Of a DNA stretch of 37,799 nt, positions 1,800 through 37,799 are shown piece after piece. Position numbers and translations under genes: made by a program. Location of the stretch: assembly GCA_011109175.1 (NCBI GenBank), contig RDEW01000007.1, positions 1,016,980 to 1,054,778 on the forward strand. The letters are read 5' to 3'. Position 1 is the stretch's first letter. Every line of letters starts with the position of its first letter. The stretch is from Dicyema japonicum (lineage: Eukaryota > Animalia > Dicyemida). The notes under the pieces were generated by a model. That model made no database searches. It was given only the letters and a program-made list of their open reading frames with translations, and had not been told where the DNA came from.

Positions 1800-2635
1800 T
1801 CAAGAGGATTCTACACTCCTACCCGAATTCTCAATTGACCAAGACATAATCCACGCACGAGAAGCCTGGAATGCCACCAACCTCCCCCTGCCTCTTTCAC
1901 AAGACTGCCAGCGAATCCTGGACAATTTATTGTGCTGGAAATCATTTGGACTCCTACTGGAATCGGCCAATCAGCACCGACGCGCTTGTTTGCTTTCGGG
2001 GGCTTCCCTTGAGAGCGGAGCTTGGCTAAACGCCATCCCAAATGGAGCTCTGGGCATCTTTGCTGATAACGAATGCGTTAGAATTGGTATCTCTCTGCGG
2101 CTAGGACTGAAAGTATGTGTACCTCACCCGTGCCGATGTGGCATCCTGATAGACTCTTATGGCCTGCAAGAAGAGCGCTGGCAGATCTCCAAGGCACAAG
2201 GCTCTGAATGAGATTGTCAAGCGGGTTATGGATGCTGCTGGATACTCGGCCATTCTTAAACCGGTCGGGTTTATGCAGAAGTGACGAGAAACGACCGGAC
2301 GGGATATGCATATTTCCCTTTGAGCACGAGAAACCACTTGTTTGGACGTGACATGTACAGACACGTTCGCCCCGAACAATCTTCACGAGTGCGCTTCAAG
2401 GGCTTGCTCTGCAGCCGTAAAAGCGGAGAAGGACAAACTCGAACAATACGTGGACCTTCCCGATAATGTCAAATTTGTTCCCCTTGCTATGGAGACTTCC
2501 GGATCCTACTCCCCCTCTACACTTGAGTTTTTCGGACGTATTGGAAACCGGATCACCTCATGCACTGAAAATCTCCGTGAACGACGCTGACTATTTGAGC
2601 GAATTTCGCTCGCAATTATAAGAGGGAACAGTCAG
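1800..2635 (+). mobile_element. CRE-clade retrotransposon 3' fragment (divergent subfamily), frameshifted
   Basis: SGAWLNAIP, HPCRCG (CCHC knuckle), RHKALN, RPDG, DVTCTDT, FVPLAMETSG, ISLAIIRGN across ORFs 1930-2211 and 2342-2590. Confidence 0.9.
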
Positions 2636-4730: not shown

Positions 4731-4807
4731 CATTTAATGTCCTTTCTTTTTTTTACAGGGAATTTTTGAAAATCACGTGTGGTCTTGTTGTGAATAATTG
4801 TATCATC

Positions 4808-7800
4808 ATGGAGCGTCGTTCATACAATGGATCAACACACATTACACCCGAGAGACTGGACACTACATGCTCTACATGCGGGTTTGCCAATGCACGCAAA
4901 TATGGACTTTTCTGCTCGTCTTGCCGTGACTTTTTCCACCTTGGATGCATAAAGATGTCTCAGCGGGCTGCGTGCTCGCTCTGCCTTTGGAACTGCAGTG
5001 TCTGCATGGGAACTGGTCGGAAAACCCAGAGGATCATTCCAAATGAGCACGTTGAACCAAACGAGCCTCTAGACTTCAATAATATGGACAACCTCTTGCT
5101 CTTCTTGTCGGATCTAAGGAAAGCCATGAAGATCCCAATCAGGATCCCAAGACCCGTCCGGATCCCCGCGGCTACATGTCTGGCCTCTGCAATTGACAAT
5201 GCTCTCACTTCCGACGACCTGGAGGCCTGGCTAAAACTCCTCAGTTTTGCTCCGATGGGGAATTCCATTTATCGACTCAAAGGGAGATCAACGGAATTCA
5301 GAGGAAAGCACGACACTTGGAAACTCCCTTTCCTCAAAAATGAAGAAGAACATCCAGGTTTTCTATGTGCATTCTCTCACCAAGACGGAAGTCAAGAAAT
5401 CAAGACATTCTGATTCCAATCCTCTGTTTATTTGAATGGCCCGGAAAAACTTAAAGAGAGAGTGAACCGCAAACTATTCGAAGGCGACGTCCGAGCGGCG
5501 TTGCGCGTCGTCGCCAGCGACGAAACTGTTATGGCTGCGACACCTGAGGTGCTAGAACTACTCAGACATAAACATCCATGTGCTCCGGAAGATTACCGCC
5601 CATTCGTGCTTCCGGGAAATTTGTCAAGGATGACCGTCACCGAAGGCGAAGTGCGACGCGGCATTTCGTCCTTTGCGGCGAGTAGCAGTGGAGGCATCGA
5701 TGGCTTGCGGCCGGGTCACATCAAAGATCTTACGGCGGAGGCTACTGCAGAAGCTGGCTGCAACCTTGTCAAATCAATTACAAAACTGGTTATGCGTATT
5801 TTGAACGGAGATATTCCTCCCCACGCAAGGGAGCTCCTTTTCAGTGCACATTTATTGGCCTTCAAAAAACCTGAAGGTGGGGTCCGCCCCATCGCAGTCG
5901 GCAACTATTTCAGAAGATTGACAGCGAAAATTGCATGCAGCATTGTCTCTCCGAGAATATCTGAAGAATTTTCCCCCTCCAACTGGGGGTTGGTGTAAGG
6001 AACGGATGCGAGGCGGCAGTGCATGCTGCGAGGTGTTTTTTTGGACAGAATGACGAACAAAACCCACACATTGGGGTCAAGCTGGACATCTGCAATGCCT
6101 TCAATTCATTGAGGAGGGATCAAATTTTCGAAACTACAAGCAAACGAGCCCCGGAACTTATTCCACTTGTCTTCCTCGCTTACGGAACAAATTCTTCACT
6201 GGTTTTCGGGGACAAGATTATCTGTTCGGAGACCGGAGTTCAACAAGGAGACCCACTTGGTCCACTACTCTTCGCTCTGGCCATCGATGAAATTGTCCGC
6301 TCTATAAACACACAACTTAACCTTTGGTATCTTGATGACGCCACAATTGGAGGGCCGTGGAGAAAAGTACACGACGTTCTGTCACATGCCGTGCCAGCAC
6401 TACGAAACCTCGGACTTGAGATAAACATAAAGAAATCGGAGCTAATAAATATCACATACTCGGAGAGTGATTTCATCAACGTGGTCGAGTCTTTCAACTC
6501 GGTATTACCTGGAATTACTGTCGTACCCAGGGAGCGGACATACTTTCTTGGGTGCCCACTTGACGAAAAGGAACTGCGGAGCCATCTACAAACAAAAGAG
6601 GATGAACTCTCCAGAGTCACGGAGAAACTTTCCTTACTCGATGGTCATACAGCGTTTTTCCTTTTGAAGAATAGCATCGGCTTGCCCAAACTCCTATATG
6701 CTCTCCGATGTTCTCCCTGCTTCAAACATCGTGACATCCTCCTGTCACTGGATAGGACATTGAGAAAATCGCTGAATTACTTCTAAACATCCAGTTTGAT
6801 GCGCCGAGTTGGAACCAATGCAAGCTTCCTACACGCCTCGGTGGAACGGGTCTCAGGTCGGCGCTGGAGATCGCCTATCCAGCATATGTGTCATCGCTCT
6901 CAAGTGGAAGCCTTTTGGTCCAAGAAATCCTACGTATTACAACCGGACTCTCTTGGGAAAAAGTCTTCGACGAAGCTCGTTGCGAATGGTGTGAAACTGG
7001 TTTGGATATGCCGAACGATCCTTCGAGGCAACGTGACTGGGATGATATTTACTCCAAGAATATCTTCGACGTGCTAAAGTCTGAGGCCAACCAGCATCGT
7101 CTTGCATGCCTCGTGTCCGCCGCCAACCATGGGAGCGGAGCGTGGCTGGATGCACTCCCGTCTTCCTCCCTGGGGACCCTATTGGACGATGACTGTATTC
7201 GGATTGGAATCGCACAACGCCTGGGAGCTGATGTTTGCGTCGAACACCAATGTCGCTGTGGAGGGATCGTCGATGCCAAAGGGCTGCACCCGCTCTCGTG
7301 CAAAAGGAGTGCGGGCAGAGCACCCCGCCATGCTGCTATGAACAACATTGTCTTGCGAGCTCTTGAAGCGGCAGGCTTCCCGGCAGTATTGGAACCTGTG
7401 GGATTGGACCGCGGAGATGGGAAAAGACCGGATGGGTTAACTGTCTTTCCGTTCACTGAGGGAAAATCGCTCGTATGGGACTGCACTGTTGTGGATTCTT
7501 TCTCGAACTCGATGATGCTCAGCTCGGCGCAGTCTGCTGGATCGGCAGCCGATCTGGCCGAAAAAATCAAGATTAAAAAATATGGCGAAATTGGAGACCG
7601 CTACCGTTTTGTACCGATAGCAATCGAGACGTCTGGTGCGGCTGGAAGTATTACAGCCTCTTTCCTAAAGGAAATCGGGGGAAAATTGGCCCACCGCAAG
7701 AAAGACGTGCGGGAAGCGGTCTGGCTGAGGCAAAGAATTGGTATCGCTGTTATTCGCGGAAACGCTTACTCCGTGATGTCAGCAGCCGCTCTCCCCATAG

Positions 7801-7811
7801 TTAATAAATAA
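4808..7811 (+). pseudogene. CRE polyprotein (~1,000 aa): PHD finger, reverse transcriptase, CCHC knuckle, PD-(D/E)xK restriction-like endonuclease; 4 frameshifts (~5250, ~5428, ~5970, ~6774)
   Basis: RT motifs RPIAVGNYFRRL, KLDICNAFN, GVQQGDPLGPLLF, WYLDD; [17 protein letters not shown]; RHAAMN; RPDG..WDCT..FVPIAIETSG. ORFs 4706-5413, 5247-5435, 5432-5998, 6019-6786 and 6888-7811 join into one reading. Confidence 0.93.
4868..5005 (+). other. PHD-type zinc finger (C4-H-C3) at the CRE N-terminus
   Basis: CSTC-x11-CSSC-x4-H-x2-C-x12-WNCSVC matches canonical PHD spacing, including the Trp two residues before the last Cys pair. Confidence 0.85.
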
Positions 7812-7944
7812 TATTTTATTGTTAATAAATTTTTGTTTAAAAAAAAAAAAATGTCCTTTCTTAGATATAGGTATGATCTTCCATCGAAAATATAGTAATA
7901 TCATCTAAGTTTAACTTTTGGGTTATGAAATTAAGAGTTTTTTT

Positions 7945-8075: not shown

Positions 8076-8630
8076 AACAGATTGGGAAAAAAGACAGTCA
8101 TCTTGAAGTTTAAACATTGTCGGCATCCCTTTCATCAGATGTCAAAGGATCTTGGGTGTGACAATTGATATGCATCTCTGTTTGACACCGTGAAAAACAT
8201 TCTAGTGAAATGTGAGAAGAAACTGAACGTATTGAAAAGTTTATCGGAAATATGGAAGAGTGGTACTCACCCAGTCTTGATGAACGTGTACAAACAGTAC
8301 ATCGAGCCATGTTTCTCATATGCATGCACCTCGTGGGGACCGTCCATTGCTTGGACAAATATGAGGAAATGAAAAAGAGGGCTTACAGAGTAACGGAGCG
8401 TTGGATTTGTTAAGATCACCGAACCTGACCTACGCCTCTGGAGGCCTCTTATGAGACTAGACTCCAGATCACGGGAAGGTTGCCTTGAAAATTCAGGCAG
8501 CCGTCCTGTACGTTCATGCGCGAGCACGAAAAAAGAACACCGGGAAAAGATGAGGTCTCTGTTAAAATGCATCGGGATCACGTGATGATTAGTTTGGTTT
8601 TTACCGTGGTCTTGGGTTAAATAAAAATGG
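8075..8630 (+). mobile_element. I/Jockey-group LINE 3' fragment
   Basis: KDLGVTID...KCEKKLNVLKSLS..W...VLMNVYKQYIEPCFSYACTSW. Ends ...MRSLLKCIGIT* plus 3' UTR tagtttggtttttacc shared with 12855-12990 and 13056-13445. Confidence 0.75.
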
Positions 8631-17405: not shown

Positions 17406-17443
17406 GTCTAGGGTTTCATAGAATTTATTTTAATTACACAGCT

Positions 17444-18003
17444 CGATGCCAAAGGGCTGCACCCGCTCTCGTGCAAAAGGAGCGCGGGCAGAGCACCCCG
17501 CCATGCTGCTATGAACAACATTGTCTTGCGAGCTCTTGAACCGGCAGGCTTCTCGGCAGTACTGGAGCCTGTGGGATTGGACTGCGGAGATGGGAAAAGA
17601 TCGGATGGGTTAACTATCTTACCGTTCGCTCGTATGGGATTGCACTGTTGTGGACTTTCTCGAACTCGATGATGCTCAGCTCGGCGCAGTCTGCTGGATC
17701 GGCAGCCGATCTGGCCGAGAAAATCAAGATTAACAAATATGGCGAAATTGGAGACCGCTACCGTTTTGTACCGGTAGCAATCGAGACGTCTGGTGCGGCT
17801 GGAAGTATTACAGCCTCTTTCCTAAAGGAAATCGGGGAAATTGGCCCACCGCAAGAAAAACGTGCGGGAAGCTGTCTGGCTGAGGCAAAGAATTGGTATC
17901 GCAGTTGTTCGCGGAAACGCTTACTCCGTGATGTCAGCAGCCTCTCTCCCCCATAGTTAATAAATAATAATTTATTGTTAATAAATTTTTGATAATAAAA
18001 AAA
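17444..18003 (+). mobile_element. 5'-truncated CRE copy, close relative of the full-length element
   Basis: High nucleotide identity to 7272-7849 with small deletions; poly(A); 12-bp TSD aattacacagct (17432-17443 / 18004-18015). Confidence 0.95.
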
Positions 18004-32236: not shown

Positions 32237-32658
32237 TTTTTTTAAACAAAAATTTTTTTAATAATTAAACAAATGTCAGTTGAGGAAGCCTGCTGCGTGG
32301 ATTGCAAACGAGTTCCCTCGGAGTATGGCTATTCCTATCTTTTGTCTTAGCCATAACCCTTCTCGTTGATCCCTTTTCTTTCTGGCAAGCAATCCTCCGA
32401 GTTCTTACAAGAATTCAGCCGTCATTGGACCAACGGCTCCCGATGATTCGGTCGCAACAAGAGTAAATCGGTGGCGATCCCCGAGGCAAGAATATTTCTT
32501 GATTTTTAGGTTCTCCGCAGTCGAAGCAGCTGTTCCAGGTGTCTGAACCGATTTAAAAATGTTCGTGCTTGAGAACGTGTCTATGCAAGTTGCGTCCCAG
32601 ACCAAAGATCTTCCAGACGTGAAGGGGAAAAGGGTCATCCCGTCAGGTCTCTTCCCAT
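32237..32658 (-). mobile_element. 5'-truncated CRE copy
   Basis: GKRPDGMTLFPFTSGRSLVWDATCIDT...VATESSG, poly(A), 12-bp TSD (plus strand ctaatttaaatt at 32225-32236 / 32659-32670). Confidence 0.92.
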
Positions 32659-32789
32659 CTAATTTAAATTCGATTGATTTTTTTTAAAATATAAATTTTA
32701 AAATTAATAACTATTATTATTTTTATATAATCACATTTTTATATAGATTTAATTTTACAAAAATACTAAAAAAAAGAATCGAGTCTAAG

Positions 32790-36809: not shown

Positions 36810-37799
36810 AGGATCATTCCAAACGAGCACGGGCACTGGTCGGAAAACCAAGAGGATCATTCCAACGAGCACGTCGAACCGAATGAACCTCTAGGCTTCA
36901 ATGATGTGGACAACCTCGTGCTCTTTTTGTAGGATCTAAGGAAAGTCAGGAAGATCCCAATCAGGATCCCAAGACCCGTCCGGATCCCCGCGGCTACATG
37001 CCTGGCCTCTGAAATTGACGATGCTCTCACGTCCGACGACCAGGAGGCTTGGATAAAACTCCTCAGTTTCTCCCCAATAGCACAAAGAATTTCATTTACC
37101 GAGTCGGTAAATGAGATCAACGGAACACAGGAGAAAGTACGAGACTTGGGAACTCTCTTTCCTCAAAAATGAAGAAGAACATCCAGGTTTTCTATGTGTA
37201 TTCTCTCACCAAGACGGAAGTCATGAAAATAAAACATCCTGATTCCAATCTTCCGGTTTCTTTGAATGGCCCGGACAAACCTGGAGAGAGAGTAAATCGT
37301 AAACTATTTGAAGGCGACGTCCGAGCGGCGTTGCGCGTCGTTGCCAGCGACGATACTGTCATGGCTGCGACGCTTGAGGTGCTTGAACTACTCAGACGAA
37401 AACATCCATGTCCTCCGGCAGATTACCGCCCATTCGTGCTTCCGGAAAATTTGTCAAGGACGACCGTCACCAAAGGCGAAGTGCGGCGCGGTATTTCGTC
37501 GTTTGCGGCGAGTAGCAGTGGAGGTCTCGATAGCTTGAGGCCAAGTCACATCAAGGATCTTACGGGGGGCTACTGCAGAAGCTGGCTGCAACCTTGTCAA
37601 ATCAATTACAAAACTGATTATTCGTATTTTGAACGGAGATATTCCTCCTCATGCAAGGGAGTATCTTTTCAGTGCACATCTACTGGCCTTCAAAAACCCG
37701 AAGGTAGGGTCCGTCCCATCGCGGTCGGCAACTATTTCTGAAAACTGACAGCGAAAATCGCATGCAGTATTGTCTGTCCGAGAATATCTGAAGAATTTC
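36810..37799 (+). mobile_element. Second long CRE copy, 5'-truncated just after the PHD finger; runs off the window
   Basis: Collinear with 5005-5970, with its own stops (36929, 37739) and frameshifts (~37110, ~37565); duplicated 21-nt segment at the 5' junction. Confidence 0.95.

Follow-up and report, generated by a model that had tools for sequence, protein, structure and literature searches.

What is a PHD finger doing at the head of a retrotransposon protein? The question is raised by a 37,799-nucleotide stretch of the genome of Dicyema japonicum (assembly GCA_011109175.1, contig RDEW01000007.1, positions 1,016,980 to 1,054,778 of the forward strand), which we refer to as the window. Part of it is a retrotransposon without long terminal repeats (non-LTR), in which a PHD finger precedes a reverse transcriptase (RT) and a restriction-like endonuclease (RLE). 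An earlier note on this DNA had proposed that the finger reads histone H3 unmethylated at lysine 4 (H3K4me0) and guides integration by way of chromatin. We favour, with somewhat better than even confidence, a different answer: the locus would be a dead full-length copy of an abundant long interspersed nuclear element (LINE) of the RLE type, inserted by target-primed reverse transcription and belonging to a cohort mobilised in trans, and its ancestral, basic PHD would be a non-specific contact module. The finger would then stand in the place of the sequence-specific fingers of site-specific relatives, and would not act as a reader of unmethylated H3K4.

Judged by alignment and predicted fold, the N-terminal C4HC3 finger is a genuine PHD and a conserved domain of an RLE family. 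As the earlier note had stated, the canonical pattern (C-x2-C-x11-C-x2-C-x4-H-x2-C-x15-C-x2-C) lies at 4868-5005, in frame with the ATG at 4808. Our alignment holds 26 sequences: that of the window, those of three further subfamilies from this genome, and 22 from distant relatives at 19-41% identity. The ligands C21, C24, C36, C39, H44, C47, C63 and C66 are invariant or nearly so among them, as are K31 and W61, a Trp that lies two residues ahead of Cys7 and is kept in at least 90%. The window finger on its own scores 17-21.5 bits against a Pfam PHD cut-off of 24, yet the assignment is secure because the matches are family-wide: all 26 aligned sequences match PF00628 (best E 2.5e-9). The profile scan that the note had suggested also recovered RVT_1 in the window (54.9 bits). 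The family profile matches solved PHD fingers at E ~1e-10, among them PHF8 (E 1.4e-10), PHF2, Alfin-like, BPTF and CFP1. AlphaFold models residues 11-70 with a predicted local distance difference test score (pLDDT) of 89-97, and the top structural matches are PHD fingers throughout, both in Foldseek (AL1 and AL3; target template-modelling score 0.77-0.84, root-mean-square deviation (rmsd) 1.3-1.4 Å) and in VIA-align (ORC1b, Pygo and PHF2; Z 6.0-6.4), where ORC1b is the best match (Z 6.4, rmsd 1.7 over 48 residues). When the PHD profile was searched against 1.84 billion representatives, multi-PHD chromatin proteins came out on top (KDM5, an SNF2-family protein and an ORC3 fusion); the same search gave no pointer to a PHD donor.

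Is this PHD a reader of H3? BHC80/AIRE-type readers of H3K4me0 have conserved acidic side chains ahead of Cys1 and on the surface that contacts H3. The case for such a reader had been made from the LDTTC that precedes Cys1 and the FFH at the His ligand, and both are indeed present. However, the Asp three residues before Cys1 (D18) is peculiar to the subfamily of the window, the three positions before Cys1 being unconserved across the alignment, and all 26 members are net basic. Conserved acidic residues of the BHC80/AIRE type are therefore lacking in the family. Net charge over the 46 residues of the finger ranges from +2 to +10, with a mean of +5.8, and an N-x-R-K loop is conserved, whereas the aligned stretch of PHF8 has zero K/R and many D/E. 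A finger this basic would be a poor partner for the very basic H3 tail. As for a methyl-lysine cage, the cage residues of PHF8, which we take to be Y7, Y14, M20 and W29, align to T20, A27, G33 and F42. Three of the four positions of an H3K4me3-reader cage thus hold small residues, and F42, the sole aromatic, is variable in the family: two residues ahead of the His ligand, the lineages of this genome and their nearest relatives have F or Y, a few relatives W (GWFH, GWLH, GWYH), and about half of the 26 a non-aromatic residue. A predicted complex between the PHD and an H3-type histone of this genome (L047, residues 2-40) scored 0.00 and weighs neither way. From these residues we infer a strongly basic PHD variant without a methyl-lysine cage and without an acidic H3-binding surface. 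Most likely, such a finger would act as a contact module without sequence specificity, for nucleic acid (target DNA or element RNA) or for the nucleosome surface.

The H3-type gene used in that prediction (L047:1483-1893) is itself divergent. Apart from the 13 canonical residues after its Met, both tail and core deviate, and the gene is repeated several times on contig C343 at a spacing of ~5-10 kb.

The PHD is an old possession of its lineage. Among the 120 best relatives, the segment ahead of the conserved IPK..AR helix varies: some have a PHD, others one C2H2 finger, a C-x2-C...H-G-P...C finger or a Cys-rich module, and those with a truncated gene call show no head. A maximum-likelihood tree was computed from the RT-RLE core, leaving the heads aside. 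In it, 19 of the 20 PHD-headed rows, including both intact open reading frames (ORFs) of this genome (L031 and L051), fall into one clade with an approximate likelihood-ratio support (SH-aLRT) of 99. The clade is otherwise made up of seven rows whose N-terminus is truncated, plus P0008 and P0034; heads of the C2H2, CCHC-like and Cys-rich kinds lie on the other side of the tree. The PHD is therefore ancestral to, and vertically inherited in, one well-supported sub-clade of a large animal-wide RLE group, and it occupies the place that in R2 is held by fingers contacting target DNA. We rejected a captured host exon as its origin, given that the PHD region occurs at more than 150 places in the genome and that the PHD-headed rows group in one clade. 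The earlier note had allowed for the finger being absent from other full-length copies; instead it recurs at all those places and heads both intact ORFs.

Relatives that bear PF00628 are present in public data, and in the ESM Atlas clusters that combine PHD with RVT_1 the few taxon-labelled members are cnidarian or arthropod. Our full-text search of the open literature, with Repbase Reports outside its scope, found PHD fingers described for CR1/L2 elements and none for RLE-type LINEs. As an architecture, the PHD-headed RLE LINE is a genuine and ancient variant, and apparently an undescribed one.

Several relatives have further domains. P0014 and P0017 combine PHD, RT and RLE with an extra C-terminal ubiquitin hydrolase (UCH/USP, PF00443; 133 bits in P0014). 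P0081 and P0114 start with an OTU-like cysteine protease, which in P0081 is followed by a C2H2 finger and then by the RT. In P0089 an RFX DNA-binding domain (69.8 bits) lies between the PHD and the RT; unless the gene call is chimeric, a single LINE protein here pairs a chromatin-type finger with a sequence-specific DNA binder.

The family is a very abundant non-LTR retrotransposon of this genome. First-look counts across the 67.5-Mb genome set gave ~8,000 candidates for the C-terminal third vs 834 for the PHD region, and this excess of the C-terminal third is the 5'-truncation profile of a LINE. The PHD region itself ranges from 100% down to 34-40% identity over its many subfamilies. Two of these keep an intact PHD-RT-CCHC-RLE ORF, of 1003 aa at positions 3290-6298 of L031 (RVT_1, 57.5 bits) and of 967 aa from the first Met within positions 1207-4128 of L051. 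These two ORFs make the single ORF a family trait, which the copy in the window is without. The protein of the family is ordered as PHD finger, helical region, RT, CCHC knuckle and RLE. With a headless relative (P0024) as query, every match in the genome lay at 34-51% identity, known PHD-family loci among them. Note that the intact ORF of L031 has, just upstream of its ATG (L031:3190-3300), a tandem repeat of ~100 bases of its coding start, the first half of the PHD included; this is a 5' duplication heading a full-length element. Long runs of N interrupt the family copies L032, L039 and L040, on C224, C182 and C13, and there simulate long open frames in all six frames. A local pile-up of copies had also been claimed for the window. 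The element and five further fragments make six in 37.8 kb, where the density of the family in the genome predicts ~4.5 per window, and the number is ordinary for this genome.

The copy at 4749-7850 is dead. It had been described as a single RT-RLE ORF, but its frame is broken at four places (~5258, ~5422, 5972-5976 and ~6770), as read from an alignment with eight sister copies that are 98-99.8% identical. The break at ~5258 is a 5-base gap relative to L036, the sole sister copy that covers this part. At ~5422 a single base is missing that five of the eight sister copies have (L036, L025, L027, L005 and L004), the gap being common to the other three; at ~6770 one base is missing relative to seven of the eight, with the gap found also in L005 only. 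The TGA at 5411-5413 seems to be in frame, but it falls between the first two gaps, where the reading frame is shifted.

The remaining lesion, a short C-run at 5972-5976, is found in all copies of at least 99% identity and in some at 96-98% (L001, L004, L005, L019, L022-L027, L030 and L036), whereas the older copies L011, L017 and L032 have one base more. The window copy would accordingly be one of a young cohort (at least 99% identity) in which every RT is frameshifted. Since the whole cohort shares this frameshift, it was probably mobilised in trans, by the proteins of intact relatives. We also weighed programmed -1 frameshifting at 5972-5976, and dismissed it for want of an in-frame slippery heptamer of the form X XXY YYZ.

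Where do the copies insert? Target-site duplications (TSDs) of 10-30 bp flank 11 of the 19 copies with both junctions, and all TSD sequences are different. The flanks of ~30 copies are mutually unrelated, and the earlier statement that target sites are unrelated holds. The bases before the TSD end in T or C and the TSDs begin with A, giving a junction of T or C followed by AA. Past the tail, GC content is 17% in the first 20 bp, 23% in 50 bp, 30% in 200 bp and 36% at 400-1200 bp, against a background of 37% (Mann-Whitney test, p = 1e-8). The targets are short, very AT-rich patches without a specific sequence beyond a loose T|AA junction. Because the preference fades within ~200 bp, it is a property at the level of DNA, and not of a chromatin domain. 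It would be accounted for by the preference of the nuclease together with the annealing of a poly(A) template to T-rich DNA, with no chromatin reader needed. The poly(A) tail, the 12-bp TSD and the frequent 5' truncation of sister copies show that the element was inserted by target-primed reverse transcription.

Several points weigh against a non-specific contact module and a cohort mobilised in trans. Binding of nucleic acid is rare among PHD fingers; most of those characterised take histone tails as their ligand, and all the solved fingers nearest to this one, by sequence as by fold, are histone readers. The aromatic F or Y two residues before the His is always kept in the subfamilies of this genome and their nearest relatives, where a partial cage is possible. 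Furthermore, the basic surface could bind the acidic patch of the nucleosome, which would amount to chromatin tethering, and the short C-run at 5972-5976 could be a homopolymer error of the assembly.

Among the alternatives, one that keeps a modest share of our confidence is that the PHD has no role in target choice, and serves in ribonucleoprotein assembly, nuclear import, protein stability or the binding of a host factor. The same may hold for the PHD of CR1/L2 ORF1 proteins, which sits beside RNA-binding modules, RRM and CCHC (PMC4120745). Some relatives of the present family join the PHD to unrelated modules, a C-terminal deubiquitinase (USP/UCH) or an RFX DNA-binding domain, suggesting that the PHD is not the DNA-targeting part. 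Furthermore, the nuclease and poly(A) priming suffice for the preference for AT-rich sites. The position of the PHD argues the other way, for it is exactly that of the DNA-binding fingers in related RLE elements. An equally modest likelihood attaches to the view that, in an animal-wide clade of RLE LINEs, a PHD took over from the sequence-specific DNA-binding finger and anchors the integration complex on nucleosomes, by way of a histone tail or the acidic patch.

Unlikely, in our estimate, is the proposal of the earlier note, in which a PHD that recognises unmethylated H3K4 would anchor integration in non-promoter, repeat-rich chromatin, in the manner of the chromodomain of chromoviruses. The analogy is to a chromatin-reader domain fused to a retroelement enzyme, and histone binding by the integrase chromodomain of chromoviruses has been demonstrated; those, however, are LTR elements with an integrase, and the finger here is without reader-type residues. 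The proposal has in its favour a true PHD fold, the Phe in place of the cage Trp, the loss of sequence-specific targeting by the element, and the readers of unmodified H3 among the structural neighbours (ORC1b, UHRF1, ATXR5, CHD4 PHD2 and TRIM24). A targeting role for LINE PHDs had moreover been proposed for CR1/L2 (PMC4120745). On the other side, the Asp before Cys1 is confined to one subfamily, there is no conserved acidic residue to receive K4 or R2 in these basic fingers, and the nearest solved fingers by sequence are readers of H3K4me3 and not of the BHC80/AIRE type. Neither the AT-richness of targets, which decays within ~200 bp, nor a pile-up of fragments no higher than the genome density speaks for it. 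On residues and site pattern alike, H3K4me0 reading would be a minority possibility. Least probable of all is a methyl-lysine reader of the H3K4me2/3 type that steers insertion to active or open chromatin, at least where the aromatic two before the His is kept: the best sequence matches (PHF8, PHF2, Alfin-like, BPTF, CFP1 and KDM5 PHD3-type), the W at that position in some relatives (F or Y in the copies of this genome) and the AT-rich, nucleosome-poor DNA that may often lie near regulatory regions point that way, but T, A and G occupy the rest of the cage, at positions that vary across the family, the aromatic itself is missing from about half of the 26, and the surface is basic.

The element lies on the forward strand (4749-7850, 3.1 kb) and is full-length by its TSD, its poly(A) and the limits of homology with sister copies (Table 1); 5' ends in the young cohort rest on two copies. 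GVRPIAVG is a further RT motif in the forward-frame translation. The RLE is assigned by motifs alone, a Pfam scan having matched no nuclease model and no apurinic/apyrimidinic (AP) endonuclease. In the helical region that follows the PHD, P114, A122, L125, W141 and F147 are conserved and AlphaFold predicts helices at pLDDT 84-92; a fold search with this region gave no convincing match. Scanning all of the window against Rfam gave no match, and no ribozyme resembling that of hepatitis delta virus was called at the 5' end of the element. No RNA run was found to contain the element. Just downstream, 250 bp of the window (8110-8358) are 81% identical to L045:2453-2704, an interspersed repeat beside the insertion.

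Table 1. Parts of the retrotransposon and fragments of its family in the window, with the basis of each assignment.
Feature	Position	Strand	Basis
5'-truncated fragment of the same superfamily	1858-2635	+	tblastn with the L031 ORF, 42-45% identity
5' TSD copy, 12 bp	4737-4748	+	exact repeat of 7851-7862; 13 bp counting the preceding A
5' untranslated region (UTR), 59 nt	4749-4807	+	follows the TSD and ends at the ATG at 4808; alignments of other copies begin at 4766 or 4775
N-terminal part of the ORF, stop-free	4808-5257	+	frame translation; aligns with the N-termini of 25 relatives
PHD finger C4HC3, residues C21-C66	4868-5005	+	zinc ligands, predicted fold, profile matches
Conserved helical region after the PHD, motif IPK..AR...W..L..F	5129-5254	+	conservation and predicted helices
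Out-of-frame stretch between two gaps, with apparent in-frame TGA (5411-5413)	5258-5422	+	sister-copy alignment; family-like peptide in another frame
N-terminal extension and start of RT	5432-5976	+	GGIDGLRPGH 5690-5719; FKKPEGGVRPIAVG 5861-5902; tblastn to the intact L031 ORF
C-run, one base short relative to older copies, -1 frame change	5972-5976	+	copy alignment
RT core	5980-6770	+	RVT_1 54.9 bits; LDICNAFNS 6082-6108; GVQQGDPLGPLLF 6235-6273; YLDD 6328-6339
One-base gap, frame change	6770-6771	+	nine-copy alignment
CCHC zinc knuckle between RT and nuclease	7251-7301	+	translation; same motif in the intact L031 and L051 ORFs
RLE region, PD-(D/E)xK type	7326-7583	+	RHAAMNN 7326-7346; KRPDG 7422-7436; WDCTVVD 7476-7496; KIKKY 7569-7583
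Stop codon (7809-7811), short 3' UTR and 13-nt poly(A) (7838-7850)	7809-7850	+	homology with ~30 copies ends at 7847-7854
3' TSD copy, 12 bp	7851-7862	+	exact match to 4737-4748, at the element end
Family fragment, C-terminal part	17442-17930	+	tblastn with the L031 ORF
Family fragment, C-terminal part	32285-32659	-	tblastn with the L031 ORF
Further copy cut by the end of the window, spanning the N-terminal region and early RT	36888-37798	+	tblastn with the L031 ORF

To which clade does the family belong? The earlier note had called the element a CRE retrotransposon. Weighed by description and by a published tree, R4 and a sister group of CRE are the two live options. The CRE clade (CRE1, CRE2, SLACS and CZAR) is alike in its single ORF with RT followed by RLE, its N-terminal zinc finger or fingers, its poly(A) and its variable TSDs (PMC12278014). 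It differs in target and in head: CRE elements sit at one position of spliced-leader RNA genes and are described with zinc-finger-like motifs, whereas this family inserts anywhere AT-rich and is headed by a PHD. The family thus lacks the site specificity of classic CRE elements and shares their poly(A) and TSDs of variable size. In the published maximum-likelihood tree, 13 clusters from Octopus sinensis are sister to CZAR, SLACS, CRE1 and CRE2, with Cnl1 outside, and RTclass1 labels clusters 113 and 126 as CRE (PMC10294476 supplements). A second, far commoner set of octopus clusters groups with R4-1_AC, DongAG, Rex6 and R4_AL, and a few fall in HERO (same supplements).

R4/Dong (R4, Dong and Rex6) and HERO are likewise RLE LINEs and include members that are not site-specific, and the single ORF, poly(A) and variable TSDs of the present family fit R4 as they fit CRE. 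All known R4 elements make TSDs according to Mukha et al. (PMC3636483), and HERO is a clade with many non-specific families according to Kojima & Jurka (PMC4640811). In the curated annotation of Octopus vulgaris, 'Dong-R4' is an abundant and recently active RLE class whose insertions average ~4.2 kb (PMC13282606), against 3.1 kb for this element; its abundance keeps R4 a live alternative. In the open literature that we searched, no PHD is reported for R4/Dong or HERO.

Two other known systems resemble parts of the element. CR1/L2 elements (Jockey superfamily) carry their PHD N-terminally, whether in ORF1, in ORF2 or in a single ORF, and the best templates for it, Pygo (2vpb, 3zpv) and PHF8 (1wep), are the same entries that top our own searches (PMC4120745). 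Metcalfe & Casane, who surveyed CR1/L2 ORF1 proteins, suggested a general targeting role for the PHD and noted the absence of functional studies (PMC4120745). According to a later citation, PHD fingers in CR1 LINEs had been described by Kapitonov & Jurka in 2003. These elements, however, have an AP endonuclease and usually two ORFs, where the present one has an RLE and one ORF. R2 shares with it the order of an N-terminal head that binds nucleic acid, RT, CCHC and RLE, and the best solved matches of the RT are R2 proteins (9nl3 and 9dou, E ~1e-10). Sequence similarity is nevertheless limited to the RT; moreover, R2 recognises one 28S ribosomal DNA site with C2H2 and Myb domains, and its insertion is accompanied in most R2 elements by target-site deletions (PMC3636483).

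For the window itself the result is modest: it holds one dead copy, and a histone-reading mechanism finds no support in its sequence. The wider interest lies with the family. RLE LINEs serve as the model of site-specific retrotransposition, and work to engineer them for inserting genes is under way; for that reason the role of the N-terminal head in target choice is of practical interest. The PHD clade, beside sisters with C2H2, CCHC-like, Cys-rich, OTU and RFX modules, is a ready comparative series for the function of these heads. If the PHD does tether the integration complex to nucleosomes, the family would be the LINE counterpart of the chromodomain-guided chromoviruses, and this would explain how an ancestrally site-specific lineage became a genome-wide coloniser.

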